64,000 nucleotides of DNA from Thalia democratica (lineage: Eukaryota): positions 17,608,001 through 17,672,000 of the forward strand of contig OZ241830.1 of assembly GCA_965202585.1 (NCBI GenBank), in the 5' to 3' direction. Shown piece after piece: positions 6,421 to 59,293 of this stretch (positions within the stretch are counted from its first letter, which is position 1; every line of letters begins with the position of its first letter). Under the pieces are notes generated by a model. The model was not told the DNA's origin and searched no databases. It saw nothing but the letters and a program-made list of their open reading frames with translations. The position numbers and the translations under genes are program-made.

Positions 6421-6439
6421 GTCTGTTAGATTAAATTAT

Positions 6440-21260: not shown

Positions 21261-21279
21261 AGATAATTTAATATAACAG

Positions 21280-26673: not shown

Positions 26674-29600
26674 TCATAAAGTTTCACAGAAAGAAAAATC
26701 AGCCAATTTTAAAGGCAAACTCGGACCTCTTCTCCATTCATCTCTTTCAATATCGTATATCTCAACTTCATCTGTAGGAGTGTCGTAATCTAAACTACAT
26801 CCCCCAATCACATACAAACTTGAATTTACAACGCAGCATCCAAAACCAATACGTGGAATATTCATTGAAGCAACAAAACTAAACTGATTTGTTTCGCATG
26901 AATAAACTTCAACCGAAGCTAAAAATGAGTCTTTGTTTTCGCCACCAACAACAAAGAGTTTTTTGTCGTAAGCAACAGTGCAATGCCCAGACCGTTCAGT
27001 TAGGAGCCTCAAATTTCTTGTTTTCCATTTGTTTTGTGTAATATCGAATGTCTCTATACTGTCAAGCCATGTATCTGTGTCATTTGAGTCGTTAAAACCG
27101 CCAATAGCCCAGACTTTTCCTTGAAAATAAGTCAGAGTAAATTCGCTTCTTTTACTGTTCATACTAGAAACTTCAGTCCATTCACAAGTTTCAAAACTGT
27201 AGACTTCGCATTTGTCTAAATCTTCAGAAGAGTTTTCAAATCCTCCTCCGACAAAAACACATTCTGCTAAAGAACACATTCCAAAGCTTAGCCGTTTGTT
27301 GTGCATGAAAGGAAACGTTTTTGTAGCTAATTCCTCGTTAAGAGATATGGTCTCATTTTCAGCTGATTCAACGTAGTCTGATCCACTATATCCGCCTATC
27401 AAATACATTTGATCTCCTTTTATTATGGATTGATGGCGACGTCTACGTGTAACGAAAGTTTTAAATTGATACCATTTACCAATTTTTGTGTCCATTTTTA
27501 AAACTCTGTTTTCGTAAGTTGTCTCATCTGATTTTCCTCCGCTAATGTATATATAATTTTTAACCTCATTGTTTTCTGCACCTAAAAAATAAAATGAAGT
27601 ATACAACAGTTCAGCAAGTTTTTATAAACACGAAATAAAAATCTACATTTAAAAAGAAAACATCGATATTAGACATCAAATCTAAAGCCTTGACTATAAT
27701 TTATCGAAAAATACTAGAAATTAACTTAAAACAAAATTATTGGGCGAAAGCTTTTAGTAATTAAAACAAAACCTGCATTTGCTGAGAGCTTTGGTTTGAT
27801 GATTAAAGTTTTAAGTGCAACAAAAGAACACAACCTTAGGTATTAAAAAGTTGTAAAAATTCTATAAATAAAGAAAATTTTATTATTGTACCATTAATTG
27901 AATAGCAGTATGTGGTCTGAACATCGTTAATACTATTATCTGATATTTCGGCTGCGTTTCTTGATAACATTTTTAAATTAGTTTTTATCCGTTTTGTAGT
28001 TTTTAAATCAGCCAATAAATCGTTATTTTCTGACTTTAAATTTTTGTAATGTTTTTTCAAGCACTCTGCTTTGTTTTGCGCCTGTCTGAGCGAATTTTCC
28101 AAAATTTCAAGGTATTTAGTTACTACTTTGTTGTTTTGCTGCAATGCCTTGTTTTCAACTTCTAGTTCGACAGATTTCGTCAATATTAAATCACTTAATT
28201 TTTCATCGTTTACGTGTAGTTCTTTCATATTGTTTTCAACTTTATTTAAAAGCCCTTCATGAAGTAAATTTTTTTTCAACCATATTTTCATGTTGTAATC
28301 TAAAGCTTTCTTATTTCCACTAAAAACTTCATTTACTTTTTCATTGTCAGTCCCTTCAAAAAATTCCGATTTTAAAGATAATATGAAACTAAAAACCATA
28401 ACAATATTAATTTAAAATTTTTATACTGAGAACTATTTCTACTCGACAAAACTAATATTTAAATTTTTAATAACGATTTCTAATCAATAACTACTGAACT
28501 TCAAGACTGGCTAACAAAAATAAACTCAGGATATTTTAAATTAATATTCGACAGTTTCCAGGTGTTTTTTAAATAAATTTCAACTGTTTGTAAACAATTA
28601 AGGTAATTTAAAGTATCTTAGGCTATTTTCGGTTAAATATGCGTTTAAAATATAAAATTGAAATTAAAAACAAGGCGATGCATCTCAAAAAGTATGATAT
28701 AAAACAGTATTCGGATGCAGGTATAATTAAACAGACTATAGTAGTAAAAAAAAAGAGAAAATTTTAAAAAAAATTCAAAATTACATATTAATTTTTTTTT
28801 TTAGTTTTCAAAAATACAATAATAAACAATTTAACAAAAAAAGTAGTGAAAAAAACAATTACTAAATTTTGAAGAACTAGAATTAGTTTTTGGAACAAAA
28901 ATTGTCAAGTTACTAATTGTCAGAACTAAATAAGTAGTGCACCTATAAAATGAAATCCTAGTACGTGTTTCATGAATATAAATTTTTAATTTATTAACAA
29001 ATTAAACAAGTAATATTATTAATTAGTTTACAACTTCATAAAATTTGTTACACAGTGTTAAACAAAGAATGTTTAAGTTAGTAGTCTTAAGAATAGAAAA
29101 AGAACATAAAAATTTATAAGAGAAAATGAAAATTTATTTTTCATGCAAAACGACTGTATAAACATATTTTAATAATCAGTAATAACAATAAGGTATATAA
29201 GATATAAATAAAGATATATTAATCATAAATTTAGGGTCATGCAAAAAAAAATTATTTTTTATTTTTTTAACTAGTTTTTAAAAGCTTTAAAAATAATGTG
29301 AAGATTGTCAATTTTATTTGTAGAAGTATCTAAAACTGTAAACTTAAAGTGATTTATAGTTTTCTTTGATCTATGTATTATCAGAGGTTGTTTTGCATTT
29401 GATTTAATGATAATATCTCACAATATAGAGTTTTAAACTTTGATAATTTCAAACTTATTTATCTGGACCTTATTATAAATTGATGATCCTTATGAATCCT
29501 GGTTAAACTTAAAACTATAAGTACAACATATATAATTAAGCTATTTAAACAATAACAAAGAAACAAACCTTTACTAATTACTGCTTCAATATTGTTGATA

Positions 29601-30151
29601 GCATCTTCACAAGTATTTACATCAATTTCGTTTTCTTTAACTTCTAACTTTTGCTCTTCAATAGTTTCTTCTTTTTCATTAAGCAATCTTCTTTTCCTTT
29701 TCAACCCACCCTTTGTTAATTTTAGCTTACTGATTTTTTCATTCAAGTTTTTAATTTCTTTCTGGAAACCTCTCAAGAACACCTTACACAAGCTGTATCC
29801 TTTACAGTTGGTTTTGTAAGTTTCCTTTAGACGGGTATTTTCTTTATCTAACTTCTTAATGATTTTTACCATGGTCATCCTTTTGTTTGCTTCATACTCA
29901 ACAACTTTATCAAAGAAGCTCAAAGTATCATTTGAACAATCACTGTAGTCAAGTTCTTTATTAACATTAAAGTGAACTTTAACTATCGTTTCTTCCTGTA
30001 ATTCTTCTCTACATATTGGACATTTCTTATTGCCACCTTTCATTACGTTTGATATGCAGCCTTTGTGAAAGGTATGACCACACGGTGTGACAGATACTTC
30101 TGTGTCTACTTTGAGTAATCTATCCAGGCATATACAGCATTCGTACTCCAT
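26674..30151 (-). CDS. RING-H2 / coiled-coil / Kelch x6 protein (putative E3 ubiquitin ligase), copy B; exons 30151-29569, 28353-27892, 27581-26674; 650 aa
   Basis: C-x2-C...CGH-x2-H-x2-C...CPIC RING-H2. Both introns are GT-AG and phase 1 (AAAG|GTTTGT, GAAG|GG, AATG|GTACAA, TTAG|GT). Exon lengths 583+462+908 give an open frame. Confidence 0.9.
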
Positions 30152-33100
30152 TATTACTTTTAGTTTTAATATTTTAAAACTTTAAAATCTGTTTAAAGTG
30201 ATTATTAAACACCTTTAAATTTACTTTTTAAGTAATAATAATACTAAAATGAAAGAAACGTATGAAAATTTTGAGTATTTTATTTAAAAAATATAAAACA
30301 AATTAACTTTGTTAAATTTTATAACAAAACTCTCAATATCATATTTTAAGTCAAAACCTTAAGTCTAGTCTAGTTTGCTTCATAGCTTAAAGCTGTACTT
30401 TTCTTTGAAGTAACGTAAAAAAATGCCTAGTTTTTTAAAAATACTTTAGAAATTACTTATTGCTCTAGGTGTTTAATAGTAAAATGCTCTGCAAGATGGT
30501 TGTAATACTAGTATGCATAAAAAGTATTTTATTGTGCAAAGAAGTTTTTAATAACTTTTGTTTTTCTTATTTTACTATAAAAATTTAATCAGAACAAATA
30601 TTTAAAATGTACTTAATTAGTGATCAATACATTAAGCCAGTGATCTTCAAGCTAATCAGAACCTGTGTACACAAAACTGCAAACATAAATTGGGTTCCCC
30701 AAGATATTATTTTAAAAAGTGCCGCTAGTGGTAGGACTACGTAAACACTTTTATTAGTATATTTCTTTTTAAAAAGATGTTTTTGAAGCTATATGTTAAT
30801 GAGATATTTTTTCATGGAACCCACTAGCGGCGCTAATATATCATTACTAAGTTTATATTAACATGAAAACCTTTAGATAACATAAGCTGAAATTTAATAT
30901 TTCATCTTAGTTTTAAAGAACATTTTTATTTAGTTTAACTTATTTTCACAGTGATATTTTAGTTATATGGCTTTGTCTTACATACTTATTAATTGAGCAC
31001 ATATCTGCAATCACCACAAAATCCCCAGTGTAGTATTCTTAAACTATTTTATTTAATATTGAATACATGCTTAAACTAATTCTTTATCTTTTACTTTGTG
31101 AGTATTATCTTCCTTAAAAATGATATTAAACTAATATAAAAATAAGAACAAAAAAAAAACGAATTAAAAACAGCTAAATTCAAAATAATGTATATCTTTT
31201 TATCTCTGTACAGTTGATGCTGAATTTTTTTCTTTCATAGACTGAATTTTTATATTTCAAAATAAGTTCAGGGTTGTAACTGATTGTCACTTCTTTCTGT
31301 TATAGAAATAAATACTTTAATTTTAACTATATTTTCTTATGAGGTTTTTTACAAATAAGTACTGTATTTTAAGATTTTAGCAAGGCTTAGCAATTTAGTT
31401 TATAGTTTGTCACTCTTTCAAATAAAAAAAAAACAATATTAATTGACAAAAAAACAGTTTGTAATTCTTTATGCTAGTTTAAATAAATAAAAAATATTTG
31501 TGTTTGCTAAAAATTTAATAACAAGTTAACAAAGCTTGAATGAATCTAACATCAATTAATCAAAAAATAGCCAATATAAAAAATAGTCTAACATACAGAA
31601 AAATATTTATCTATTCTAAACTTTTTAATAATATTCAAACAAACATGTGTCAGTATAAGTTTTTAAAAATAATTACTGTGCTTAAGTCTCCAAACTTTTA
31701 AAATAGCATTAAAGTTATCCTGAGTAGTTTGAGTGTAAACTCTGTTTTTTAAACAACTAAGTTTCATTATTGCTTTCTAATCTAGTATAATTAATATCTA
31801 CAAATATCAATAATTGCGCTGTCGATTAAGATCGTTTTTGTACATTAGATCAGGATATCTTACTGTAAATATTTAAAACTTGATAATGTGTTGATTTTTG
31901 ATTTTAGCTTAGTTTATTAAAAGAAGTTAGATAAAAATCAGAAATCTAGTAATTAAATAATTAAAATACATAAAAAAAAGTTAAAATGAAAATCTAATAA
32001 TTTGAAAAATAATAAATTTAGTTGTACTTTCACCAAAAGAAAATGATTTTATTATTAAGTCAAACATTGAAAGTAAAGTTTATTAACTAAGTTTGACAGT
32101 GTTGTAATCCTTTTAGTCAAAACTGTTCCGATTGATTAGAAAATATCTTGAATGATTTTGAACTTACCTGTAGTCACCCAGGACTACTTTTCTTTTATCA
32201 GTTTAAATTTTTGAAAGCCAAGAAAAACCAAGCTCTTCAACAAATATTACAACAAAGTAATAAAATATTGAAACTAAACCAACTATATCTCAATTAAAAA
32301 GTAGAAAAAACTGACTTGAAATTTCAAATCTATATTGAGATAAAATAACCTCTCTGAGCAAACTAGAGTTTTGAAAACAAATTTAAAACTTATTCAGTTA
32401 TCCTGTGTCATACTGAGATTTTAAAAAGTTACAAAGTATCCGGGATTATTCTTAATTTGTGGCGACCTTTTTAATAACCTGAACTATCATAGTTATAACA
32501 GACTGATTATTTGAAACATTTATTTTGAGGCAAAAAAGGTTGTTAATTAAAATTAATAAACAGCCTTAAGTTCAAAATAAAATATTATTAAACTAACATG
32601 AAAACTTTTAAAATCCATATGACTTTAAGTTTTAATTAGAATATCAAAATACCTCTAAGTACCTTTATTTTTGCAAGTACAAAATAAAAAGTTTGGGAAA
32701 CCATGGTTAAGATATAGTATTTTTTCTCTTGAAAAACTTTTTTTGTGAATCATTGCAGAATTAATTTTCATATTGGCTTAAATTTACAATGAATTTATTA
32801 CAATTAAGTTGTTGTAACTCTGAAAGTAAATTATTCTTTACAATAAGAGCTCTAAGGTTAAGAGCAAGTAAGTATAACAAGACATTTTTATTCCAGACTT
32901 AACTGTTTTATACTACTAACAATTTATAAATTCTATGTTTAAAATTGTCTTATTATGGTTTAAAATAGTTGCTCCTACCACAAGGTTGCCATTTTTTAAG
33001 GCATAATAGAACATTTGATTTACGAAAACTGAATTAAGTGGTATCAATTTAGCCTGAGGTGTTTTCAGTTTGTACAATAATTTAAACAACTAAATAAATA

Positions 33101-35479
33101 AAAAGTTTGAGAATTTACTTCTGATCAAGTATGAATACCAAATAATTCAAAAAAGTAACCAAATTGTTACAATAAGAAATATAAGAATAAAAGAAATTTA
33201 AATTTCAAGGAAACATTTAAATCATAAAATAAAGATTAATGTATAAAAAATTTTCCAAATTATTAAAAAAACTTAAGTTAGCCTGAGTTGCTAAAAAATG
33301 TAATAGTTTTAGACTTAAAGCACTTAATTTAAAGTTGTTATTAAAATATCTTATTTTTTAACAAAAAAAACTCTACTTGATTAAAAAAATACTAGACAGT
33401 AGAACAGCCTCTTGATTTAATAAAATTTGAACATTTAAAATCAAAGGTAAAACAAAATATATAAAAAATTACAACATGTTAAAAAAAGTTTAAACACCTA
33501 TTTTAACTAACCACTATACAAACTAAAAATATATTTCGCAATTTAGTTTAAGTTTTCTTTTAAATAACTTTTAATAATTTATAAATATACTGCAACAACA
33601 TAGTTAACTTAGAACAAAAAGTTAAGTACATGTACTTTTAAAGTGCTCCTAATACAGGGTTGCAATTTTTTAAATAAAAAACAGCCAGCATTAATAACCA
33701 AAGCTTAGAATGAGTTACATTAATATAGTAAGAGTTAGCTTCAGCTATTACTTATAATATTTTTATTTAAACTTTCTCATAAGTCTTGTAATTAAAAACT
33801 TCTGTTTATGATGTATAACAAAAATTAAATTGTAATTAAAGTTCAATTTAAGGTCAAGGATCTTAAAAGAAACATAATGTTCAATTAAAATAAATACTTA
33901 AAGTTATAAAACACAAAGTTTATATAAAAATGTCCAAACCAGCCTGAGTTTTTAAAAAATTTATCAAAAAATCCTGAGTTTGTCTAAACAAGCCTAAGTT
34001 ACCCAAGATTTAAAAAAAAATAGTTTGAAATATTCAAAGTAACTTAAAAGTAAGACAGCCTTTTCATCATTTAAATGATTCTTTATAACCTTGTTTACAT
34101 TTTTAAAGTCAATAATCAAAAAACAAATACTGGTAAATAAGCACAAGCTTTAACAAGTGTAAAAGTTAAAAGACATTCAAGTATGTAGAGTTTTTTTTTC
34201 TCTCCTTTTTTAAGGACGGCACATACATCAGTAAACAGTTCTAAAGTGGCTCATACTACATGCATAAAAAGCAAAATGTTAGTGAGAATAAAAGTACACT
34301 AAAACAAAAATCTAAATATCAATATAATTTCTCTGTTATTGAAGTTATGTTATAAACTAGGAATGTGTAAAAACAGTTTTTAAAATTATATTACCTATAA
34401 GTTAATTTGGCCCTACAAAATATTTTAAGGTATTTTATTAGAAGCTAGTACAAAAGTACTCTGTTATCTAAAAATATTTTGGATGTACTACCCCACTTAA
34501 AGACCAAGACTTGAGACTCGCCTCTACTTTTGTAGCTAAATGAATAAAAATTTAAAAGTCAAAATAAAAACAGAGCAGAAAAAAAATTTAATATGCTTAA
34601 GTATGTGAAAACCTTGTTTAATACAGCTTATTTATAAATTCTATAAAATAAATTAAATTTTTACGTATAAATTAGTTATAAACAAATAGTTAAGTATGGT
34701 GATACAACTTGAAGATAAAATTAATCATTACTGAAACAAAACTAAATATCAAGATAGTGAAAAGTTTACATATTTAATAAATTGCTAATAGTGTTGTTTT
34801 TTATAGAAACCTTCTTTTATCAATTTTCACAGGTCTGATTTTCATTTAGGCTTTGATTTACTAAAAATTTATTAAATTTATATTATTAGTAAGTTTAGGT
34901 GCAAGTAAGTATAATATTTTATTATATCTAGAATTAATTGTTTCATACTTTTAATAATTCATAAGCTTTTGCTACAATTTTTCTTGTTCTTATCTAAAAC
35001 AAACGTTCATACTACACTGTTGCCATTCTTTAAGGCAAAACAGAATACTTGATTTACTAAAACCAGACTGATGTTTATCAATCTAGCTTAAGTTGTCTTC
35101 AGTTTGTAAAAAAATTTAAACAACTACACTGTCAAAAAGCTTTATAAACTACTTTTATTTAAGTAAAATCACTTATAAATACAAAACAATAAACAAAGGT
35201 TTAAATGAAAATATAGCTCTCGGCAAAAGTTTCATAAAACAACTCAAGTGATTTTTAAAAACATATCTAAACTAATCTAAAGTAATATCAAATTGATATG
35301 TTCTTAAAAAAATATCATTACATATATTGTATACCATATTTATTTAAACGTAATTTAAAGGGATAAAAATATCTCTATCTTTAACGGGTATAAATAGGTA
35401 TAGCAACTTAATTTAGTTATAAAATAAACAACAAAAACTATGTACAATTTATTACTTTCACAAACGAACGATTCAAAAT

Positions 35480-35815
35480 GGTGCGCGACGCTTAAGTTTT
35501 CTACACATTAATCTTATACGAACTTCAATATCGATAAAATTGGAAAATACAATATTTATGAACGTAGAAGTCCTATCAAAATTGTTTCATATCGTACCAC
35601 AGCTTACGTCTTCGGCCTCGAAGTCTCACGTAAGCTGTTTTATATCGTTCTATAGTTAACCTCTGCGGCCGCGCAGTCCCAAGCCAACTATTTTGTATCG
35701 TATTGCCATTCACGTCTCCGGCCTCGAAGTCTCACGTGAAAAGCTGCAACTACTTCCACGAAGGAAGGGTCGCCCCGTTGAAGCGGCCTAGGTCCGCTCC
35801 GTAGGGTAGTCGAGG
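35480..35815. promoter_or_regulatory. GC-rich island with promoter-like motifs and duplicated hairpin-forming elements
   Basis: CAAAATGG (YY1-like), TATCGATA (35529-35536, DRE-like), TCACGTGA E-box, and a duplicated core of about 27 bp at 35600-35637 and 35709-35740, all in a low-GC background. Confidence 0.45.
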
Positions 35816-35872
35816 TATAATAACCTAATTTGTAGATGTGCTTCATCGTTTATATACACTTTTACTCTCTCT

Positions 35873-36000
35873 TTTGCAGGTGTCTCGTTGCATGTTGGAA
35901 GCTGCAAGTGTTTCGGCATGTTGGTATATGCATGTTGGAATCTGCAGGTGTCTCGGCATGTTGGAATATGCATGTTGGAATTTGCAGGTGTCTCGGCACG
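35873..36000 (+). repeat. Minisatellite, about 40-bp unit, about 3.3 copies
   Basis: Units of TGCAGGTGTCTCGGCATGTTGGAATATGCATGTTGGAA(T/G); the first unit is shorter. Confidence 0.85.
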
Positions 36001-39000
36001 GTTTTAATAGCCAGCTTACATACTCACCTGGTTTTGCAAACGGCAATTAATGAATACAAAATTGTATTTATTTTGCCTTTGTCAATCAAAAAATATCGAG
36101 TAGAGTTTAAAATATAAATTAGAGAACTGTTGTTATTATTTATTTGAAACTTGTCTTTTTATAAAAAACTTTAATTTAAAAAGTTTTAAATTTTATTCTA
36201 ATGCATGCATCGACATATGGACAATTGAAGTGAAATAAGTATAATTTCACATAAATGTCCAACACATATATTAAAGCTTTTGCTTTCTTACCAAATTTTA
36301 TCTGTTGTATTTTAAACTTATAGAAATTAAACATTATATGAGAAATACTATTTCAATAATGACACTTTTGTCTCAACACAAGCTAGCTAGTATTATTTCA
36401 ACATTCAAATCTTGTTTGACATTATTTTTCATAAGTTTACTAGTGTGAATATTTTTCTTACATCTAAGACTTTATAACTAAAGTGGTTTTTTTACGTAAT
36501 GTTTCCAAAGTCATTTTTTACTATTTTAATATTTTTAAGTATTTATTTTTTAAAATGAAAATTTTTCATTTTTTTTTCTCATACTATTTTATTTAAGTTT
36601 ATTACAAGTCTAAGCCTACTGAGTCTAGCTAGATTCTCAATTAAGCTTTTAGTCAATAAGTGCAGCTGTTTTTGTTGACATATGACATTTTATATATTAA
36701 ATCTTAAAAGGAAATAACTTAAAGACACATATTTTTGTATACTAAGTAAAAATGATCTAATAATAAACTTTTAAATAATGATAACCAAAATGAAAAAGAA
36801 TTTGCATTAATTTTACAAACTTTTTCAACTTTTAAATTGGCAATATTAAAGCAGGTTTTAATTTTTTTAAGCGTGTAGTATATTTTTTACACTTACTATT
36901 GTTTTATTTCAACTTTTTATTCTGTAGTACACTAAAATCCAGAGGTGTATCTACCAGCGGCGTGTTTTGACTGGTTTCCTGCTCCCTGTGTACCCCCTGA
37001 GAAAAAAAAAAGAAAAAGGAAATAAATATTTTTAGAATTTCACTAAGACGTATTTAATTGATTTTGTTTCGGTTATTTGATAAACTTTGAATAATGAACG
37101 TTGAATACAAAACAATGACAGATTAAAAAGTTGCAATAACAAAAAATACTCGTTTTTGCCCATCTAAAATAGATTTTAAAAAATTATAACTGTGACGTCA
37201 TAATAGGTAAAAGTTTAAAAGTAGCATTTTTTCTAGGAAACTTTTTACTAAAATGCTTTTAGTTCCCATTATAATTGTTAATTAGTGTATATAACTTTCG
37301 ATTAAGTGTATTGTTTTTGAACTAGTAAGTACAATTTTACTTATAAAATGTCCAACATAATCACTAAAGCTTTATTTTAATTAGTTTATTGTATATAATA
37401 ATGTTGTGTTTGTACTTGAACTTATATATTATTTGTTTTGGGTCATGTCTTAGATAAAAATAGTTGTGATTAAAAAAATGTTAACCATTTGAATATTATT
37501 ATTTAAGTGTATTAAAATACACTAATTAACTTAATGTACACTTAAAAGAATATATTGTTTATTTTTTCTATTTTGCAACAGTGACCGTTAGAAAAATGAA
37601 TGTTTTTCAAATTTACAATCAGGGATATTTGTATATCCCGAAAAAAAGCACTCGAAAAAACTAATGACCTATGATTAACTTTTGGCAATCCCAAAACTTA
37701 GTTGCCAGATTTCTAAGAAAACCTCTTGACCAAGAAAATTTCAATAAGAACAAGAAAACAGAATTTTTACTTCTGGAATTCTAAAGACCCTGCCCTAAAG
37801 TATCTTTTTAACTTTAAGTGTAAACACTTTATATATATATATCTAGAATGAGGAAAGTACATTTGAAGTCCTTCTGAGCTTAAAAATGCTGAGTCAGGAA
37901 ATTTTTTTAATTATTTTTTTATTATACTTTATCCCTTAACCTGCCTTAATTAAATTGGTCAAAACAAAGCAGAAAACTTAAATTAATAAAACTAAAAATA
38001 ACATGAGAAAAAAACTTCTTTTTGTGCTGACTAGGTTTTTTCAGCTCAGACTGACCTTTCAGAATAGTAGAACTTGCATGACAAGTCTAAGGAATATTTA
38101 GAATGTGATTGTAAAACTGTCATGTTTTATTACAATTAATTAGTTAATATGACATGATCAGCTAATACAGGGATTAGCAAACTGCGGAATGCGGGTCAAA
38201 TTAGCCTTTAAAGACAAACATTGTGGCCGTAATATACTTTTCAACTAAAAACATACTTTTCTAAAACAATATAAGTACTTTTATGGTGAAACTTACAATT
38301 ATTCTCTAAAACTAATCTCTTTTTATTGTTATATTTTTTCTTTTAATAGTATTTATGAAACTGTTTTTTTTTTCTATAAATGATGGAGCCAGAAATTCTA
38401 TCAAGCTTTTTAAAAGTATTTGTTGTGGTTATCTGTACATTTTATTACTAAAAATTTTAAGAAAATAATCATTGTTTAATTGTTTATCATAAATTTGTAT
38501 ATAATAATCAAGTATTAGCTTTGAAATAGTTTTTTACACTCTTTTTAAATTAACTGATCATAATTAACTAAGAAAATTTAAAGCTTAAGTATTTTATTCA
38601 TTTTTTAAAATGGTTTGATTAATCTTTTTGTTTAATTTTTAGTTTTCATATTTTATACTAATTTCAACTTAAACTTAAATGTATATTAAATGTTTTAAAG
38701 AGATCTCAACTACTGGAGGAGAAATAATGAATTTATTCTTTAAAGAATTTATTTTTTAATATAAGTTTCGGTCAAAGACCTCGTCAGTGCTTAATTAAAT
38801 CTAAAAAATATGTGACAATCATGGAAATAGCATTTAAACAATTTAATTGAAATAAAAACAAATTTTTACTCAATGTTTTTACTTGAAAAACAAAACAAAT
38901 TCAATTTAAGTATTAAAATTGAGTTTAAGTCAAAGCAAAAACTTAGTTAAATGTATATTTTAAATAAAAATATCAAAATAAAAACAAGCATAATAAAATA

Positions 39001-39439
39001 TGCCTCAATCAAGATTTAGTTTTAATGAAAATAACATTTAGTTGTCTATTGGCTTTCAAAATATATAAAAATGTTTTCAGAGATCATGCGCATACTAAAA
39101 TCATTAAACACTTAGAAAATACATAATACTATTTCAGTTCTATATTGTCACAATTTATTAAGAACGTCAATTAAGTTTAGTAACATATATCAGTTATAGA
39201 ATTAAGTTTATAAAAGAATTAAAAACCTTTGAAATTGGTATTAACTAATCATACTATGTTAAAAAAAGAAACGCGGCTTTGAGCTAGTTTTAACAAAAAA
39301 TATCAAATAATTGGAGGTGTAAGGAATGAGAAATTATACTTTTAAATTTTAAAATTAAATAGGTCAATGTGAGGTTCTTAACAGTTCTAATAAATAATTT
39401 CATTAGTATCTAAAAAAAAGTTTCTATTATCTATCTCCT

Positions 39440-41415
39440 TTACCAAGCATTGTTATTGCGACAAGGTTGGTGGTTCCTACCTAAAGTATTCATGCTCCTT
39501 ACATCCTTCTTAGATTTAAGAACTTTAGCTCCTGGTGGGGGTTCAATCCTCCTTGGGGGTTCATTTACACGAGGCATTGAAGGTTTCGGTATACAACTTG
39601 TCGGCCTTTTATTACCAGGAATGATTCTTCTACCGTTCCTATGCAAAGGATTTTTCGCAGGTGGGGGAGGTAATGTGAGGTAGCTAGATTCAGGTTTAGT
39701 CATTTTCTTTGATGCAGTGACTTGAGACGCTGCTGCTTGTTTTGGTTTGGCAGCCTGACTCGAAGGTGTGTTTCCATGGTTGTTGCATTGAGCTGTTTTT
39801 GCTGGTTTTGCTTTAGACCCAGCTGCTTGTATTGGTTTGGCCGCCTGACCATAAGCTGTGTTTCCAGGCTTATTGCATTGAGCTGTTTTTGTTTGTTTTG
39901 CTTTAGACCCAGCTGCTTGTATTGGTTTGGCAGCCTGACTGTAAGCTTTGTTTCCATTGTTGTTGCATTGAGCTGTTTTTGTTGGTTTTACTTTAGACCC
40001 AGCTACTTGTTTTGGTTTGGCCGCCTGGTTATATTTATTTCCAGAGTAATTACTACAATCTGTTTTTCTTCCATCTTCTTTTGGTTTGACCTTTTGACTG
40101 TTCCTGTTGTTTCCACCAAACAAATTGTTAAACGAAGGCTTTGCGTCTTCCAGAACTGGAAAGTCATTAGGATTTTTTGAAGGTTGAACATTTGGCTTAT
40201 TAACCCATTTCGGATTCAGAGGGAGTTGAGGTTTAGGAGTATTTGTTTCTGTGTTTAATCCAGGATAAATTTCTCTACTGTTAATTTCAGGAACTGGTGC
40301 AGGAGTTTCATTATGTTCTGGTCTCTGATTTCCCATGTTGCGTCTTCTTGGAGCTTCTACTTGAATCATTCTTTCTTCTCTCTGTTTTTGTTTACTCATA
40401 CTATCCTTGTGGTATTTCAGGTTGTGAACTTGCAAGTCAAATTGCGATGCAAAAGCATTAGTGAATTTATCATTTTTACAGCTGGCTTTTTCACATACAA
40501 AATGGTTTTCCTCGAAGTGCGTGCGAAGATCTTCATATTTTATAAAGTAGTAGTTGCTCTCTTTAATAGCTTCAATATCATCTCGTCTATCACAAATGTG
40601 ACAAAAGAAGTGATCTTTGCGCCGATGTTTGTACAAATGATCTTTGTCATAAAAGCGATGCCAACATAACTGGCACTGAGGATGTCCCTTATGAGATGTG
40701 TTTTTACCTTCACCTACACATTTGTGGATGTCTAGTTGTTTATCGGTATAATAACTGAACTCACTGTAGAATTGGTGGTCATGGGTTAAACACAAGCCAC
40801 AATATTGTACATTATGTTGTTCTCTCATGTGTTGTTTGGTTTCGCAAATTGTTTTGTCAGCAGGCCTGTCAACACAAATGGGACACCTTGGAGCTAGTAC
40901 TTCATCAAACAATTCTTTCAGTTTTTCTGAAGTAAAAAAGTAAGCTGCTTTATCGTACTTCTTAGAACAGCCATGTTCTAACAAATTTAACAGTATTGTG
41001 TTTGTTAAGCTAGAAAAAGGTAACAGTTTATCAGATATTATAACTTTATCGAGCTCAGCCTTACAAATTGGACAACTGTACTCTTTCGAAAGTATTCGCA
41101 TCTTCATTGAACACTTCATGCAAAGTGTGTGATTGCATTTAGAAATGGCGTACTGCTGTATTTCATCACTGCATATAACGCAGATGTTGTCAGAGTCATC
41201 AAAATCAGCCTGATGTTGATTTACATCTTCTGCTTTACTTTCTACGTGAGTTTTTCTGCTGAAGCCACTTCTTTCAAACCCTTGATTTGCTTCGTGATCA
41301 TTACCGGGCGTCCAGCAATATCTCTAAAGTTTTTAGTCTTAGAGCTTTTTTCATACTGCTCATGACTAGTAGAGGTTTTATCTGCTGTTCTGCTTGAGGT
41401 TTTACAGTCAGTCAT
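39440..41415 (-). CDS. ZNF598: ZNF598/Hel2 family RING E3 ligase (ribosome quality control); start ATG (41415) is out of frame with the RING-containing ORF (open 41323-39440)
   Basis: RING CVIC...CNHTLCMKC...CPIC is encoded upstream of the called ORF start. SHKGHPQCQLC, HRRKDHFFCHICD and HFEENHFVCE...FTNAFASQFDLQVH match the ZNF598 C2H2 cluster. Confidence 0.88.
39728..40035 (-). repeat. In-frame 90-bp (30-aa) tandem repeat, about 3.4 copies, within ZNF598
   Basis: QAAKP(K/I)Q(V/A)AGSK(V/A)K(P/Q)(T/A)KTAQCN... units; CAG codons are 90 bp apart (40025 to 39755 is 270 bp). Confidence 0.92.
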
Positions 41416-49393: not shown

Positions 49394-49737
49394 CAGGGCT
49401 GCCACACGCTTAGGAAAAATAAAGAAAGTTTGAAATTTTTGAAATATAATTATAAATTAAAATAGTTTAATATTTTTTTAAAATCAGAATGACCCAAGTT
49501 AGTTTTTTTAAATAAAACACTTATGACAGTTTTAAGATTTCTCAACATCTCAGAACAGTTTTTTACTAGTTTTTAATGAAATTTAGTTTCATTGTTTGGT
49601 TAGTTCATAAACATTTTTTTTGCAACTTGATTTTATTGATTTTGATAAAAAAATGAGGATTTGAAAAGACTCTGTATGTCTCAAGACAGTTTATGGTCAC
49701 TCAGGACAGTTTTTTGGCCCAAAGAGTAGCAACCCTG
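49394..49737. mobile_element. MITE-like element, CAGGGTTGCCA TIR family
   Basis: CAGGGCTGCCA...TAGCAACCCTG; decayed 6-bp TSD TTTATA/TGTAAA. Confidence 0.6.
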
Positions 49738-52700
49738 TGTAAAGTACTAAACCTTAGTAATACAACATTTTGAGATGCATCAAAATATTATTAAGAAATT
49801 TTTTCTCATAAATTAAATTTTGCTTTATAATATCATAAATAATCAATTGGGTTATATTTAAACAGATTTCTGCTCACATTTTATATTTTGTTATTTAGTA
49901 ACATACAGTTATGTTAAATATATAGTATAATCTTCTTGTTTAAATTATTATTCTTAACAGTTTAAGGTTCTGAACTATTTTAAAATATCGTATTACAAAT
50001 ATCAGTTAAAATAAAATTAAATAAAATACGCAGTTTTTTGTAAATTTTTACATAAAACTTATCAGTATTTAAAATTTTGCAAATTTGCGTTGACACAAAG
50101 CTAAATGTTTTTAAATAGCTAAAAATGAGGTAAAATACACTAAAGTTCAACTTTAGAAACTTTATTTAAAATCTAAATGTTTTCATTATTATAAAGACTG
50201 CATTTTTGTCTATAAAAATTATTAAAATCAATTAATTTGAATATTATTTTTGTGACCCAAAAGTATAACTATATTTATACATTCATTACATATTTCAGTA
50301 TTACAACATGGACTTTTCTAAAACAGGTTATATATTTGTTTTTTAAGTAAAATTAAATGTTTAAGAAAAGTTTTTGTATTTTAAGTAAGGCTATGAAACT
50401 TTAATTTTTAGAGAACATTCTAAGTTGATTTAAATATTTTTTAGTTTTAGATAATATTAAAACGATACATAAATACTGAAACGCTAAAATTTTTGTTTGT
50501 TAAAATTTTGACATTTTACAAACAACAGAATGGTCTTTTTATCTGGAAAATTGTAATTTGAAGTTTTAGTTGCAAGAACATTTCCTTAAGTTTTAAGTAA
50601 GTATTTCAAAAACGTAGAAGGAGAGAGACTTTAGTGATATAGTTTTTTTTGCCGTTTAGTTTGCGCCTCCCATAGGAAACCTATTGTACTCTTTGGCTTC
50701 AACTGACTATATCTCAGAAACTAGTTTGAATTTCAAAACCCTTATAAATGAACTTCTAGCTTAGCGGAAACGTTACAAATCAAGACAAATATATTAAACA
50801 AGTGATTTATCTTTGGTAATTTTTTAAGGTAATTAGATTAAAAATAGTAACTATGCTAGTGTATGTCTCTTAGATACACTACATATAACTTAAACTACAT
50901 GTAAAAGTTGAATGTTTTTTTTCTGTCTAAATATTGCACATAATAATATTTTCAGAAATAGTTACAAAACATATTCTAAAAACTGAACTAAAGTTTTTTA
51001 ACAGTTAATTTTATACCAATATCACAGAAAATAAACTAAAATTATATTTGAACTTAAGCTATTAAACTATTTAGACAAGCTTATATTTAAATTTATTTGT
51101 CTTTAAACAAGAGAGCCATGTTACTTGGAAAAACTTAAATCTAAATATTTGTTGAAAAACATAAAAATTTTGAAATATTAGATGAAAAACATCATAAAAT
51201 ATGGATTTTTTACACAATTCTATATGTTAAGTTTTATATTATGAGAGATTTATTTATTTTTAAAATCTTTAAAGAAGTTTAGTAGTATTTTTTATACTAC
51301 AGAATACATTTATCTACACCTCAAATTAAAACCTGGAAGAAATTTGTACAAAACTAGTGACCACTTCCACTACAATAAAAATATAAATTAGTAGCAATGC
51401 AAAATGTTTTTTTGTATTCAATTGTAAGTGATCTTTATTGTTAAGAAAGGTCTGTATTTAAATCCAAGCTTTCATGGTCAAAGATTCATTTAAGTTATGT
51501 TTTTTACTAAATGAAGCTACCAGAAGATTCAATTTTTTTGCATTTGTGAAAAGAAACCTTTTACTTTATTTTTAAACTATTTTTATTTTCCATTATATTT
51601 TAAATTTTAAAACAAAAAATGTTTTAAACTATTTAAAGAATACTTTTTTTTAAGAGAAAAATGACAAAAAAAGTTGTGCTCTTTGTTTTTGTATAAAAAT
51701 TTTTTTACAAAAAAACCTCTCAAGTTAATTTAATTATTTTTTTTATTAAACTTATAGTTTATATTTAAAGCTTTCATATGATTAAATAGTGCATATAAAG
51801 TATATAGAAATAATAGGTTTTAGTTAATACAGAGTTGTCACATACTGAGGCTAGTTTGTGTTTTGTAAAGGTTTTTCAAAAAAATCAGGCTGGCTCATCA
51901 TATTCTTGGGTTCTTTTGGAAATCTCAGGCTAATGAGGTATGCTTTTTAATAGATTTTTAGCTACTTAAGTTTATTATTTTTAAATTTTAAAACTTTGTT
52001 CTTGAAAATTATCTTTATTTTTTACCTATTTTAATCTGTTGTTCTGGCAAAAAAAGACTACTGTTTATTTTCGCGTTTTAATTTCTCTTATAATTTTTTT
52101 TTTAATTTTCTCTCATTGATTAGGATGACTAGAATAATTTGATGTAACTCGGATAGATTTTTTTTACTCTCAACAAAGATTTTCGCTCTAAAATGTTGAA
52201 AACCTTTTAGATACCAGTTTAAGGTATTAGTATGATTTAGAGTTGTCACACACTCAGCCTAGTTAAACTTTTCTTAAAAATACAGTTTTTCTAAGTTTTT
52301 TTTCTTGCAAAAAGTAGTCTAGTTTTGGAATTTCTTTTAAATTTCTTAATACATTAGGTCAACATTTTTTTTTAAAAGTATGGTTTTTTTTTTGATTTTT
52401 TTTTTCAATCGTTATGATACTTTAATCGTACTAGTACATACTTTTCAGCTTTTGCTTTCTCTTTTCTATTTTAAACTTTTTCTATTTTAAACTGACCCAC
52501 ACTTGTTTGTTGAAAATCATGCAGAGTCACACACACTTAGTATAACTCAGGACAGTATATATCATTTTAAATTCTCAGGATAGTTTAAAAATTTTGAACC
52601 TTATTTCAATGCTTTTTATTTCATTGAATGTAATATATTTGTTGTAGCTTCAATTATATGTTTTTTCTTAAATTTCAATTTTGTTGAATAACTAAAATTT

Positions 52701-53107
52701 CTTATTTTAAAGATCATTTATTTTAAATATTTTTTATAAATAATTAAAAATTTAAGGCGCAGGATAGTGTTTTGACTTAAAGAGTAACAACCCTGCTTAT
52801 ACTTGTTACTCAGGCTGATTTTGTTTTAGTTTTAAGAAAAGCAAACTTAACAATTATAATTGAACTGCCAACTAGAGATCTAAGTTCTTTTATTTATGAA
52901 ATATATAAAGGCAGCAATTTTAATAGTTTTAATTTAATATTTATAAATTTAAAAGATTTAAAAGATGATGTAACTTCATGTTTCACAAAAACTTTTAAAA
53001 AAGATAAAAAGTCATGTTTGTGTTTTATTAATATATAATTTTTCATTAAGAATTAAAAATCTAGTGTTAGTGAAACATTTAGTTATTTCTTTCTGTTTTA
53101 ATTAGAC

Positions 53108-53804
53108 TAGGGGTGAGCAACGTACAGCCCGCTGGCCGGATCCGGCACGCAGAGTGAAAATGACCGGCCCCCGACCGATTTTCAAACTTTTATGTGATCC
53201 GGCACGCAAATAAAAATGATCGGCCCGCAAGCGAATCTACAGGCCCGCAAAGGGTTAATATTACAACAAAGCAAGACTGTAAGAATTTGACTTCAAAAAT
53301 ATTTTAATAAGTTAATGTGTACTAATAAATACACCATTTTGTCCTAATACTTTGTTGTTGTTCTAACTTAAATAGAATATCTTGTTGTAAAATTACCCCG
53401 AGTAAAATATTTTTTTAAGTACGATATTCTACATACGTACCTTTGTCAATTACAATGTCAATTCTAATTATAGACATTATTGAAACATCTGACATATCTT
53501 GATCTACATCTTATATTGTTAGGTTTGAGTTTTTTTTTGAATTTGAAGGCTTTCAAAAAGTGATCAACTGTCTCTATAAAATTAGATTACGGCTGGATCC
53601 GAAACTTTTATTTATATTAGAATCCGACGGGATCCGTATCTCGACTTAAAGTTAGTTTTCAGTCGGATTTCGATCTAAATAGTCATTATTCGGCTAGATC
53701 CAGATACTGGATCTAGTAAATCACTAATTCAAAGTGCTCCGCCCCGCAAAAGACTAAATTTTTCCGGATTTGGCCTGTTGATAGAAAAACGTTGCCCATC
53801 CCTA
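53108..53804. mobile_element. Non-autonomous hAT-like (Charlie/MER58-type ends) element, with a nested CCGGA-rich fragment ending at 53726
   Basis: TIR TAGGGTGAGCAAC / GTTGCCCATCCCTA, GGCCCGC-rich subterminal repeats, degenerate 8-bp TSD AATTAGAC/AATTATTC; absent from the mirror position in arm B. Confidence 0.7.
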
Positions 53805-56338
53805 AATTATTCCAAACTAAAATATTAATTTAATGTTTTAAATGTTTTAAAATATATTACAGTTCCTCAGTTGTTTCACATTACTTAAGCTTTAAAAAAA
53901 CTGTTAATTGATATCTTTTTCAGTGTTTTCATTATGTAATTACAAAAAAAGGTAGTTAAAAGGTATTTTGATATTGTAATAAAGACTTAAACAAAATTTT
54001 TTTTAATGTTCATGTTAGTTTACAATTTTTTTACTGAACTTAAGGTTTTTTTTAATTTTAGTTAACAACCCTTTTTGCCTTAAAATAAATATTTCAAATA
54101 ATCTGATAATTATAACTATGATTTTTCAGGTAACTAAAAATGTTGCCACAAACATAGAATAATCCTGGATAATTTGTAACTTTTCAAAATCTCATTGTGA
54201 CACAGGATGACTCAAGAATTGTTTTTTTTCTAAACTCCGCTGGCTCAGATAGTTTTTTATCTCAATATAGTTTTGAGATTACAGGTCGGTTTTTCTCTAC
54301 CTTTTAATTGAGATATAGTTGATAAAAATTGAATTGTTTATTACTTATTGATAACTTTTGTTGAAAATCTTGATTTTTGTTGCCTTTGGAAAGTTTTAAA
54401 TTAAAGAAATAAATAGATCCCTATTTGACTACAGGTCAGTTGAAAGTCATTCAAGACAGTTTCTAATCAATCAGAACAGTTTTGACTAAAATAATTACAA
54501 CCCTGTCAAACTTTATTAACAATTTTTACTTTAAATGTTTAACTAAATGATAACAAAAAATTGTTTGGTGCATACTTGATTTATCTTTATTTCAAACTAT
54601 TAGTAGTCTATTTAACTTTTTTTTTGTATTTTACATTCGTTAATTACTAGATCTCTCAGTTTACTTTTACAGTACCAATCTTAAAAGTCAGCATAATTAT
54701 TGATATTAATTAAACTAGACTAGAAAGCAATAATGCAACTTAGTTATTTGAAAAACAGAGTTTTCACACACTCAAACTACTCAGAAAAACTTTAATGCTA
54801 TTTCAAAGGTTTAGAGACTTAAGCACAGGAATTTTTTTTTGAAAACCTTATGCTGACACATATTTGTTCGAATATTATTGAAAAATTTGACTAGGTTGAT
54901 ATTTTTCTGAATGTTAGACTATTTTTTCTATTTATTATTTGTTGAGTTAATTAATTTTAGATTAATTTAACCTTTGTTAATTTTTTATTAAGTTAATGGG
55001 CAACATGTTTATATTTTTCTAGTTCAAATTAACTTAAAGATTTACAAACTTGTTTTTGGTCAATCAGGATTGATTTTTCACTTAAAAGAGTGACAAACTC
55101 TAAACTAAATTACTAAGCCAAGTTAAAATCTTAAAAACAGTACATACTTATTTTTAACAAACTTCATAAGAAATTATAGTTAAAATCTCAGTTTTTATTT
55201 TTTACCAGAAAAAAGTGACAAACAGTTACAACCCTGAACTTATTTTGAAATGCAAAAGTTCAGCTTATGAAAGAAAATTTTCAGCATCAACTGTACAAAG
55301 ATATAAAGATATACATCATTTTGAATTTAGCTGTTTTGAATTCGTTTTTTTTTGTTCTAATTTTTATATTTGTTTAATATCATTTGTAAAGAAGATAATA
55401 CTCACAAAGTAAAAGATAAAGAATTAGTTTACGTATGTAGTTAATATTAAATAAAATATTTTAAGAATACTGTACTCGGGAATTTGTGGCGATTGCGGAC
55501 ATGTGCTCAATTAATAAGTATGTAGACTAAGCCATGTAACTAAAAAATCATTGTGAAATTAAGGTAAACCAAATAAAAAGGTTCATTAAATTTAAAATGA
55601 AATATTAAATTTCAGCTTGTGTTATCAAAAGGTTTTCATGTAAATATAAACTTAGTAATGATATATTAGCGCCGCTAGTGGGTTCCATGACAAAATGTCT
55701 CATTAACATAAAGCTTCAAAAATATCTTTTTAAAATGAAATATATTAATAAAAGTGTTTACGTAGTCCTACCACTAGCGGCGCTTTTTAAAATAGTATAT
55801 TGGGGACCAAATATATGGTTTGCTGTTTGGTGTACACAAATTCTGATTAGCTTAAAGATCACTGGCTTAATGTATAAATTACTAGCTAATTACATATTTA
55901 ATATTTGTTCTGATTTCTGTTTTATAGTAGAATAAGATAAACAAAAATTATTAAAAACTTCTTTGCACAATAAAATACATTATATGCATACTAGTCTAAC
56001 AACCATCTTGCAGAGCATTTTACCATTAAACATCTAGGGACATAAACAGAGTTTATAATATTTTTATAAAACTAGGCATTTTTTTACCTTACTTCAAAGG
56101 AGCTTTAAACTATGAAGCAAACTATACTTAAGGTTTTGACGACAAATATGATATTGGAAGTTTTTTTTATAATATTTAACGAAACTAATTTGTTTTATTT
56201 TTTTTTATAAAATTGTCAAAATTTTCACACGGTTCTTTCATTTTAGTATTATTTAAACTTAAAATGTAAACTTAAAAGTCTCTATTTATCATTTCAAACA
56301 GATTTTAAAGTTTTATAATATTAAAATTAAAAGTAATA

Positions 56339-59293
56339 ATGGAGTACGAATGCTGTATATGCCTGGATAGATTATTCAAAGTAGACACAGAAGTATCTGT
56401 CACACCGTGTGGTCATATCTTTCACAAAAGCTGCATATCAAACGTAATAAAAGGTGAGAATAAGACATGTCCAATTTGTAGACAAGATTTACAGGAAGAA
56501 AATATAGTTAAAGTTCATTATAATGTGAATAAAGAACTTGACCACAGTGATTGTTCAAATGATACTTTGAGCTTCTTTGATAAAGTTGTTGAGTATGAAG
56601 CAAACAAAAGAATGACCATGGTAAAAATCATTAGGAAGTTAGATAAAGAAAATACCCGTCTAAAGGAAACTTACAAAATCAACTGTAAAGGCTACAGCTT
56701 GTGTAAGGTGTTATTAAGAGGTTTCCAGAAAGAAATTAAAAACTTGCATGAAAAAATCAGTAAGCTAAAATTAACAAAGGGTGAGTTGATTGCTGAGATA
56801 ACAAGATTGTTTAATGAAAAAGAAGAAATTATTGAAGAGGATAGTTTAGAGGTTAAAGAAAATGAAAATGATGTAAATATTTGTGAAGATGCTATCAATA
56901 ATATTGAAGCAATAGTTAGTAAAGGTTTGTTTATTTGCTATTGTTTAAATAATTTAAATGTTAATGTTGAACTTACAGTTTTAAATAGAATCAGGATCCA
57001 GACTGATCTTCAAATTGTAATAAAGTCCAGATGAAAATTTGAAAGTATTAAAATGTTAAGTCTTTTTAAAAAGATATTATCATTAAATTCATAGCAAAAC
57101 AACCACTGATGATACATAAGCTTAAAAAAAACTATTAAGCACTTAAATCTACAGTTTTAAACACTTTTTCTAATAAACTGACAATTTTGTAAACATTTTT
57201 ATTTTGTAATAGCTTTGAAAACTAATTAATAAAAATTAAAAGTAAACTTAATCGCATAACCCTAAATGTATCATTAATATATTTTTATTTATGTCTCATA
57301 TGTATTATTATTTATGATAATTAAAGTATATTTTTACAATAATTTAACTAGAATTTTATACTTTAAATACTCATTTAACCGAAATTTAGCCGAAGTTACT
57401 TTGAAATATTTTATTGTTTATAACCTATTGCAATTTAATTAAAGAACTTCTGAAAACAGAGGATTATGAATAATAAAATTCAAATTTTTTATTAACTAGC
57501 GTGTCCTGTAGATTAGTAGTTTTTGTTTTAAAACTTTTATAAAAATCTAAGTTTCGAATTGTGTCAATTAGAAATAGTTCTCAACAAAGAATTCTTACTT
57601 TTTTTTTATGTATTAATTTTATCTTTGAAATCGAAATATTTTGAAGGGATTGACAATGAAAAAATAAATGAGGTTTTTAGTGGAAAAAAGAAAGCTTTAG
57701 ATTACAACATAAATATATGTTTAAATAAAAATTTACTTCATGAAGAGTCATTAAATAAAGTTGAAAACAATATGAAAGAACTACACGTAATCGATGAAAA
57801 AATGAGTGATTTAATATTGAGGAAGTCTGTTGAACTTGAAGTTGAAAACAAGGCGTTGCAAGAAAACAACAAAGAAATAACTAAATGCCTTGAATTTTTG
57901 GAAAATTTGCTAAGACAGGCTCAGAACAAAGCGGAGTGCTTGAAAAAAGATTACGAAAAGTTGAAGTCTGAAAACAATGATCTAATTGCTGATCTAAAAA
58001 CAACAAAACAGATAAAAAGTAATATTAAAAGTTTATCAAGAAATGCAAGCAAAAAGGAAAATGATAACATTAATGATGTTCAAAGAACAAACTGCTATTT
58101 AATTAAAGGTACTTCTTTTTATTATTACTACACGTTTTACATCTTTATATTACTTTATTTATATATTGTATACGTAGTTATTTTAAAGCAATTTAAAGCT
58201 TTAACCATAAAACCAAATCTCTCAGTAGACGCAGATTTCGTTTTCATTGCAAAAAGATTTTGCTTAATATTTTACTAATTTATAGTTTATTTTACGACAA
58301 ATCAAACCCTGCACTGATTACTATTGCCGACGTTTTCTTTTTATTGTAATAACGTTATAAAAACTTGCTTAACTATTGTGTACTTATTTTTATTTTCTAG
58401 GTGCAGAAAACAATGAAGTTAAGAATTATATATACATTAGCGGAGGAAAATCAGATGAGACAACTTACGAAAACTGTGTTTTGAAAATGGACACAAAAAT
58501 TGGTAAATGGAATCATTTTAAAACTATGGTAACACGTAGAAGTGAACATCAATCCTTAATAAAAGGAGATCAATTGTATTTGATAGGCGGATATAATGGA
58601 TCAGATTACGTTGATTCAGTTGAAAATGAGACCGTATCTCTTAACGAGGAGTTAGCTACTAAAACGTTTCCTTTCATGCACAACAAACGGCTAAGCTTTG
58701 GAATGTGTTCTTTTGCAGAATGTGTTTTTGTCGGCGGAGGGTATCGAGAAGAAAGCGAAACCTTAGACAAATGCGAAGTCTACAGTTTTGAAACTTGTGA
58801 ATGGACTGAAGTTTCAAGTATGAACACTAAAAGATGCGAATTCACATTGACTTATTTTCAAGGAAAAATCTGGGCTATTGGCGGTTTTAATGACACAGAT
58901 ACATGGCTGGACACTTTAGAAACATTCGATATTATACAAAACAAATGGACAACAAACAATTTGAGACTTCTAACTGAACGATGTGGACATAGCACTGTTG
59001 CTTATGAAAAAAAACTCTTAGTTGTTGGTGGCAAAAAAAAAGACTCATTTTTAGATTCTGTTGAAGTTTATTCAAGCGAAACCAATCAGTTTAGTTTTGT
59101 TTCTTTAATGAATATTCCACGATGTAATTTCGGATGCTGCGTTGTAAATTCAAGTTTGTATGTGATTGGAGGTAGTTTAGATTACGACACTCTAACAGAT
59201 GAAGTTGAGATATACGACATTGAAAAAGATGAATGGAGAAGAGGTCCGAGTTTGCCTTTAAAACTGGCTGAACTTGCTTGCTCAAACATTTAA
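56339..59293 (+). CDS. RING-H2 / coiled-coil / Kelch x6 protein (putative E3 ubiquitin ligase), copy C; exons 56339-56924, 57647-58108, 58401-59293; 646 aa
   Basis: Same RING-H2 and the same phase-1 GT-AG introns as copy B. Exon lengths 586+462+893 give an open frame. Confidence 0.9.

Follow-up and report, generated by a model that had tools for sequence, protein, structure and literature searches.

In animals, Kelch propellers are known as substrate receptors that need BTB-BACK domains and cullin-3. Among ubiquitin ligases made of a single chain, COP1 (RFWD2) has an N-terminal RING, a dimerizing coiled coil and a C-terminal propeller that binds short substrate motifs with its top face, while the TRIM-NHL and TRIM-SPRY proteins (TRIM2/3/32/71; TRIM5alpha and the finTRIMs of fish) combine a RING and a coiled coil with a C-terminal recognition domain, and some of them have expanded in particular lineages, with positive selection on the loops of that domain. 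Here we describe a gene family found in a 64,000-nucleotide (nt) stretch of the Thalia democratica genome (assembly GCA_965202585.1, contig OZ241830.1, positions 17,608,001 to 17,672,000 of the forward strand; hereafter the window). The window holds two complete copies (B and C) and one cut copy (A) of a three-exon gene whose predicted product carries a RING-H2 finger, coiled coils and a six-blade Kelch propeller. We interpret the copies as lineage-specific paralogues, each encoding a single-chain RING-H2/coiled-coil/Kelch protein that is most likely a self-contained ubiquitin ligase.

By analogy, this family seems most like COP1 and the TRIM-NHL/TRIM-SPRY proteins. The order of parts is the same as in COP1, but the propeller of COP1 is a seven-blade WD40 domain rather than a six-blade KLHL-type Kelch domain, and COP1 is a conserved single-copy gene, in contrast to the multi-copy family with a variable binding face seen here. 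The first-pass annotation of this DNA had likened the locus to TRIM-SPRY and TRIM-NHL logic, an apt comparison in that RING, coiled coil and recognition domain lie on one chain. The family nevertheless falls outside the definition of a TRIM, since a B-box is missing; its recognition domain is Kelch, which no described TRIM class is known to use. KLHL proteins and KEAP1 share the same type of six-blade propeller by sequence and fold, but have BTB and BACK domains where this family has a RING and a coiled coil. Lacking BTB or BACK, the products would not be KLHL adaptors, and with a RING and coiled coil in their place no cullin should be needed. The nematode F-box and MATH-BTB families and the plant F-box-Kelch family, which evolve adaptively, are likewise large, clustered, fast-turnover specificity families with variation on the substrate-binding surface; unlike the family described here, which has a presumably catalytic RING on the same chain, they are adaptors of cullin ligases.

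Gene structure and relatives

The gene models in the window are listed below (a slash in a splice site marks the exon boundary; CDS, coding sequence; aa, amino acids).
56339-56924 / 57647-58108 / 58401-59293, forward strand: copy C gene, CDS of 1941 nt, 646 aa
56339..56924, forward strand: copy C exon 1, with RING-H2 (residues 5-47), conserved post-RING motif and long helix; donor AAAG/GTTTGT, ends in phase 1
57647..58108, forward strand: copy C exon 2, second coiled-coil segment, 462 nt (154 codons); acceptor GAAG/GG, donor AAAG/GTAC, phase 1 kept
58401..59293, forward strand: copy C exon 3, six-blade Kelch propeller and stop codon; acceptor TTCTAG/GT; Pfam Kelch_1 E 7.5e-56
30151-29569 / 28353-27892 / 27581-26674, reverse strand: copy B gene, CDS of 1953 nt, 650 aa
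29569..30151, reverse strand: copy B exon 1, RING-H2 and helix, one codon shorter than copy C exon 1
27892..28353, reverse strand: copy B exon 2, coiled coil, 462 nt
26674..27581, reverse strand: copy B exon 3, Kelch propeller and stop
58..962, forward strand: copy A Kelch exon, acceptor TTCTAG/GT as in C, frame intact; its upstream exons lie beyond the window start

Every intron of B and C is GT-AG, the phases are 1 and then 1, and each reading frame has a single terminal stop and no internal one. The phase-compatible joining of RING, coiled-coil and Kelch exons that had been proposed for this locus is thus borne out at the sequence level in both copies by splice sites and matching phases. 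The span originally assigned to the family, 26674-59293, does contain B and C, but the third copy (A) lies outside it at 58-962, where it is cut by the window start. Searching the window by tblastn with the three exons revealed no additional copy or fragment. Exon identity between B and C is 82-96%, with only in-frame indels (multiples of 3), against 72-78% identity and large indels in the introns.

On this evidence the view that the three open reading frames (ORFs) behave as one gene is supported. Two adjoining genes that were duplicated together, a TRAIP-like RING/coiled-coil gene and a stand-alone Kelch gene, would be in keeping with the lack of RNA support for the junctions, but we consider such a pair very unlikely. 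No ATG precedes blade 1 in the Kelch exon, whose start is a conserved polypyrimidine-AG acceptor that matches the phase of the upstream donor, and the only stops at the ends of the coiled-coil exons come from read-through into the intron. Exon order, orientation, splice positions and phases also recur in six diverged marine metagenome contigs (L002, L003, L006, L007, L008 and L009, from TARA Oceans and other sources). These have a GC content of 25-30% and a base composition as in the window, which is AT-rich (GC 22-40% per 2 kb). At the amino-acid level, the RING and coiled-coil exons are 62-74% identical to those of the six contigs, and the Kelch exon is 68-73% identical. In L002 and L003 the donor of exon 2 lies 4 nt further downstream, with one codon added and phase 1 kept.

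Relatives that carry RING, coiled coil and Kelch in one uninterrupted, intronless ORF speak against two separate genes as well. We found two of them in samples of a similar kind, P0165 (507 aa) and P0238 (549 aa), which are more distant and whose Kelch part is 33% identical to that of copy C. This intronless subfamily has a RING with a 3-residue insertion and a Trp, the coiled coil, a KKKRRK basic patch, and the Kelch domain. P0165 lies at L004:2714-4237 on a TARA Oceans metagenome contig of 34% GC, which may represent another species or a retrocopy lineage. In a third relative, P0053 (L001:52-1518), whose contig has a GC content of 46%, a single exon and ORF encodes both coiled coil and Kelch, and a stop and a probable acceptor lie immediately 5' of it. 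Where the introns fall therefore varies among lineages of the family.

Domain architecture

All searches and structure predictions were made exon by exon or with database proteins. Pfam assigns Kelch_1 to all three Kelch exons, with 4-6 stretches in each (E 1e-50 to 1e-56), and zf-RING_2 to residues 4-48 of the first exons of B and C (E 4e-12 and 7e-12). No B-box, BTB or BACK was detected in any exon by Pfam (threshold for zf-B_box in exons 1 and 2, E <= 0.01), and the remainder of exon 1 and exon 2 match no curated Pfam family. An AlphaFold2 model of the Kelch exon built with 51 aligned relatives (predicted local distance difference test, pLDDT, 93.6; predicted template modeling score, pTM, 0.91) has six blades, with a C-terminal strand that closes blade 1. 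Foldseek places this model at template modeling (TM) scores of 0.89-0.92 to the Kelch domains of KLHL3, KLHL12, KLHL17 and KEAP1, and by sequence the closest natural structures are KLHL3 (E 3e-42), KLHL2, KLHL20, KLHL12, IVNS1ABP and KEAP1. Pfam, AlphaFold2 and Foldseek agree with the architecture that the first-pass annotation had put forward, namely a RING-H2 and coiled coil joined to a six-blade Kelch propeller; the propeller is of KLHL type, and there is neither BTB/BACK nor B-box.

The RING is of the C3H2C3 type. Across 23 family sequences none of the 8 zinc ligands varies, and Ile7, after the first Cys pair, and Pro45, in C-P-x-C, are invariant or nearly so. C-terminal of the RING stands a family-specific motif, E-L-x-Y-S-D-C-S. 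In the AlphaFold2 model of exon 1, the RING fold (residues 1-60) is followed by one helix of about 90 residues (74-165) at pLDDT 95-98, then by an acidic low-confidence linker and a further helix that reaches the exon end. The long helix begins 14 residues past the RING. Both coiled-coil exons have an a/d heptad periodicity above that of shuffled sequences (1-8 of 200 shuffles reach the observed score). For copy C exon 2 the score is 0.78 versus 0.54 +/- 0.09 in shuffles, 4 of 200 of which reach it, and there is no Pro or Gly past residue 60. In the coiled-coil exons in general, the part past residue 60 has no proline and consists of 29-40% charged residues.

The RING and helix had been called TRAIP-like. 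TRAIP/NOPO does share the layout of exon 1, with a RING-H2 at the extreme N-terminus and then a long coiled coil, but the likeness established here is one of layout. The C-terminal half is a Kelch propeller here and, in TRAIP, a tail with a PCNA-interacting motif, and TRAIP is absent from the listed Protein Data Bank (PDB) matches of exon 1 (best 60 of 93) and of the protein P0154. The nearest named outgroups are arthropod RING and coiled-coil proteins of 380-430 aa with uninformative names, at 25-29% identity over RING and helix.

One feature of the RING bears on catalysis. The family lacks the Trp after the sixth ligand that is found in many active RING-H2 domains and that both the intronless subfamily and the arthropod RING-coiled-coil proteins have kept. 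Together with the actin association of many Kelch proteins, this absence could favor a non-catalytic scaffold or adaptor in which the RING serves for dimerization or for docking to another ligase, and the Kelch domain tethers cargo, for example cytoskeletal cargo. We rate such a role as the least probable of the explanations considered, with a very small chance of being right. The RING keeps its zinc ligands, as well as the Ile that follows the first Cys pair and the Pro in C-P-x-C, and the closest RING sequence matches among those listed (RNF4, RNF125, Arkadia and TRIM21) are all active E3 ligases.

As a self-contained ligase, the protein would recruit a ubiquitin-charged E2 through its N-terminal RING. 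Helices of about 90 residues (exon 1) and of about 100 further residues (exon 2) would pair into a coiled coil that dimerizes the protein, and the top face of the Kelch propeller, formed by the BC loops after GG and the first DA residues after Arg, would bind a short motif of a target protein. A single chain would in this way replace the BTB-BACK-cullin-3-RBX1 assembly needed by KLHL proteins. From sequence and predicted structure we infer ligase activity, dimerization, targets and expression.

Variation and selection in the Kelch exon

Strands A-D of each blade were assigned from the AlphaFold2 secondary structure. The BC and DA loops were taken as the ligand face and the AB and CD loops as the opposite (bottom) face, as in established Kelch propeller topology; the ligand face is thus set by strand topology and not by measured coordinates. 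The motif variants reported earlier after the conserved Arg and GG (RCH/RRR/RSE, FKISSGD/FENSSED/YREESET and others) are all present in the copies. Among A, B and C, variable positions make up 25% of BC loops, 28% of DA loops, 29% of bottom loops and 17% of strands. The 3 residues after each conserved Arg and the 7 after each GG are enriched for variable positions (22/57 versus 47/239; odds ratio 2.6, p 0.003), although this set holds only a third of all variable positions among the three copies. The proposed concentration of differences on the ligand face is therefore upheld for the narrow Arg/GG set, but not for the top loops as a whole (p 0.10). Of the 30 columns that vary most in an alignment of 51 family sequences, 27 fall on BC (18) or DA (9) loops, and DA-loop variation sits on one or two residues after Arg while the remainder of the loop is conserved. 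These variable positions presumably match the BC loops and post-Arg residues that contact peptides in KEAP1 and KLHL3.

Codon models were fitted to nine Kelch exons, those of A, B and C and of six metagenome loci at 68-84% amino-acid identity, with our own GY94/F3x4 implementation with pruning; site posteriors are naive empirical Bayes rather than Bayes empirical Bayes. The ratio of nonsynonymous to synonymous substitution rates (omega, or dN/dS) under M0 is 0.45. By structural partition it is 0.77 in BC loops, 0.54 in DA loops, 0.34 in bottom loops and 0.28 in strands (likelihood ratio test p 2.5e-15), with 0.67 for the top-face loops. M2a fits better than M1a (twice the log-likelihood difference 22.9, p 1e-5), with 0.9% of sites at omega 7.9. 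The corresponding statistic is 23.3 for M8 versus M7 and 18.6 for M8 versus M8a, with 3.4% of sites at omega 3.4. The largest statistic in 16 data sets simulated under the fitted M1a was 3.5. When each of three segments is given its own tree, to allow for the mosaic ancestry described below, M2a is again favored over M1a (statistic 15.7, p 4e-4), and codons 48 and 117 are again identified. The two strongest sites lie in the Kelch exon of copy C as follows.
58544..58546, forward strand: codon 48, DA loop, second residue past the conserved Arg in blade 2; states across the nine sequences, H/R/E/G/E/Y/G/N/Y
58751..58753, forward strand: codon 117, BC loop of blade 3, four residues after GG; S/S/E/E/P/I/E/F/E

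Codon 48 is the strongest candidate and codon 117 the second, each with a posterior of 1.00 under M2a, under M8 and with segment-specific trees. Posteriors above 0.5 were also obtained for codons 69, 145, 214, 235, 261 and 264. Each of the 8 sites with posterior > 0.5 belongs to a BC or DA loop; these loops account for 43% of residues, and the corresponding chance expectation is 0.43^8, or about 0.001. These results favor a small class of positively selected codons on the ligand-face loops, as read from the alignments and entangled with gene conversion. The suggestion of diversifying selection made by the first-pass annotation accordingly holds for a class of sites with omega > 1 located on ligand-face loops, but not gene-wide, where dN/dS is 0.33-0.65.

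Several points weigh against a family of diversifying ligases. Pairwise dN/dS is below 1 both in the Kelch exon (0.33-0.65) and over the whole gene for B versus C (0.36-0.42). Variation among the three copies is no lower in the bottom loops than in the top loops, and the difference between top loops and the rest is not significant (Fisher p 0.10). The site models rest on our own implementation and nine sequences, the metagenome contigs among them being of unknown orthology and possibly chimeric, and recombination, which can inflate such tests, is present among the copies. No RNA run covering the stretch was found among the sequencing runs searched; two runs with contigs on copy C are DNA-like, with fragmentary contigs and no exon-exon joints. 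In addition, 38-43% of Kelch codons fall in the omega = 1 class, a proportion that also fits relaxed constraint in young duplicates.

The low overall omega, the large neutral class, the equal variation of bottom and top loops and the lack of RNA support would all be expected if the copies were young duplicates drifting under relaxed constraint toward pseudogenes, with loops that tolerate change and a diversity that is unselected. We nevertheless judge such drift to be improbable. Copies B and C retain every splice site and every zinc ligand, and their 646-650 codons remain open. Strong purifying selection (omega about 0.1) acts on about 57-62% of Kelch codons, beside 1-3% at omega 3-8. M2a and M8 beat their nulls at p about 1e-5, with none of the 16 null simulations exceeding 3.5, and all eight candidate sites are on the BC and DA loops.

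Mosaic history of the copies

The copies lie in three related units arranged as direct and inverted segmental duplications, at 1-6900, 20500-31200 (inverted) and 55300-64000. The unit with copy C is described as follows.
55300..64000, forward strand: segmental duplication unit with copy C, in direct homology to 1-6900 (copy A) and inverted homology to 20500-31200 (copy B)

Repeat families (D2-D12 and I3-I25), windowed identities and runs of shared states give this unit a mosaic ancestry. The pair of copies that shares derived states is B and C at 58401-58700, A and B at 58701-59000, and A and C from about 59000 to 60200; further 3', it is A and B at 60494-61393 and A and C again at 61994-62293. 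Tree topologies differ between segments in agreement with these changes. By sequence comparison, the copies are mosaics produced by gene conversion or recombination. Located in direct and inverted duplications, they exchange segments by either process, and copies outside the window probably also took part.

Amino-acid differences in the Kelch exon, of about 300 residues, number 51 between A and B, 48 plus 4 gap columns between A and C, and 47 plus 5 gap columns between B and C. The figure of 51 changes given earlier for A and C is thus within the range of the three pairs (47-51), but for A and C themselves the count is 48 plus 4 gap columns. An identity of about 94% had also been quoted for the adjacent non-coding DNA. 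This agrees with the A-C 3' flank (0.89-0.94 per 250 columns, about 93%) but with that flank only, since B-C introns are at 0.72-0.78 and the 3' flanks of B at 0.73-0.80. The A-C Kelch exon is 89.6% identical at the nucleotide level, and its synonymous divergence (dS) of 0.19-0.22 is about three times the divergence of the flank (about 7%); over the final third of the exon, which lies within the A-C tract, divergence is about 6% and equal to that of the flank. The contrast between a diverged exon and a conserved flank, which had been taken as a sign of selection, does not stand as such. The pair relationships switch along exon and flank, and the contrast arises because of mosaic gene conversion, as dS too exceeds the flank divergence.

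Between B and C, dS differs strongly by exon: it is lowest in exon 1 (0.09-0.14), highest in exon 2 (0.39-0.42) and intermediate in the Kelch exon (0.22-0.26). The RING exon and 5' flank of these copies (55300-56338 versus 31200-30152) are 92-96% identical, unlike exon 2 (dS about 0.4). Judged by these values, the 5' end of B and C seems to have been recently homogenized, and the coiled-coil and Kelch parts not. Among the Kelch exons of A, B and C (58-962, 27581-26674 and 58401-59293), dS is 0.17-0.27 in BC/DA loop codons and 0.12-0.14 in strands and bottom loops. The higher loop dS suggests that conversion, and not only point substitution, moves loop variants around; it could reflect micro-conversion of loop segments, or homogenization confined to conserved segments.

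Family size and named homologs

Database relatives of the Kelch exon form 63 distinct clusters (90% identity) at 39-80% identity to the exon, all of them unnamed metagenome ORFs from the European Nucleotide Archive (ENA), followed by distant Kelch proteins. For exon 1 there are 35 clusters (50% identity) at E <= 1e-10; the matches to this exon were unnamed fragments and generic RING proteins. About 900 contig pieces of at least 90% likeness fall on 3.2 kb of copy C, mostly on exons, a number that is not a copy number; by summed depth, the exons of copy C are covered roughly 5-6 times as deeply as its introns, and far more deeply than by single intron contigs.

With P0165 as query and with a four-protein profile, no named RING and Kelch protein was found among the reachable matches, which held only bacterial Kelch proteins; these homolog searches were word-indexed and could miss distant relatives. 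A full-text literature search, limited in extent and thus no proof of absence, gave no description of a RING-coiled-coil-Kelch family. The earlier proposal of an undescribed system is therefore sustained in that no named protein or paper with this architecture turned up in the literature and databases searched, but the design itself is a known one. Overall, this is an intact gene family whose architecture appears undescribed and whose design is of a known kind.

Other features of the window

Three further groups of features were noted. Between B and C, at 39440-41119 on the reverse strand, a 559-aa ORF has a ZNF598-type RING (E 3e-8) and a C2H2 finger, and past the fingers three tandem repeats, each about 30 aa long and rich in A, K, P and Q. 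By its sequence it looks like a gene for a ZNF598-like ribosome-quality-control ligase unrelated to the RING-Kelch family. Between A and B, at 9303-13959 on the reverse strand, there are ORFs of a long terminal repeat (LTR) retrotransposon (protease, reverse transcriptase, RNase H and integrase), enclosed by 99%-identical inverted repeats at 6828-8740 / 18961-20873 and 13875-15750 / 17638-19513. The ORFs flanking the genes in the duplicated units (2274-2777, 4925-5320, 5398-5673, 6444-6860, 23183-23482 and 60619-60885) match no Pfam family.

Implications

Wiring a Kelch propeller to a RING via a coiled coil would add, beside TRIMs and COP1, a third independent solution of the RING-coiled-coil-recognition type. 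Large copy number, a variable face and exchange of segments make the family a candidate for a diversified recognition system in a group whose innate immunity is poorly known. We offer only tentatively, as something that could be true but probably is not, the idea that the family is an intracellular recognition repertoire of this planktonic chordate lineage, with well over 100 ligases acting as restriction factors against viruses or mobile elements. Their binding faces would, with the same low likelihood, have been diversified by point substitution together with gene conversion between paralogues. A function in immunity or genetic conflict is speculation. If such a repertoire exists, it would be an independent, Kelch-based reinvention of the ligase role played by vertebrate TRIM5 and finTRIM proteins. 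As compact, single-chain putative Kelch ligases, the proteins would also lend themselves to direct tests of their target specificity.

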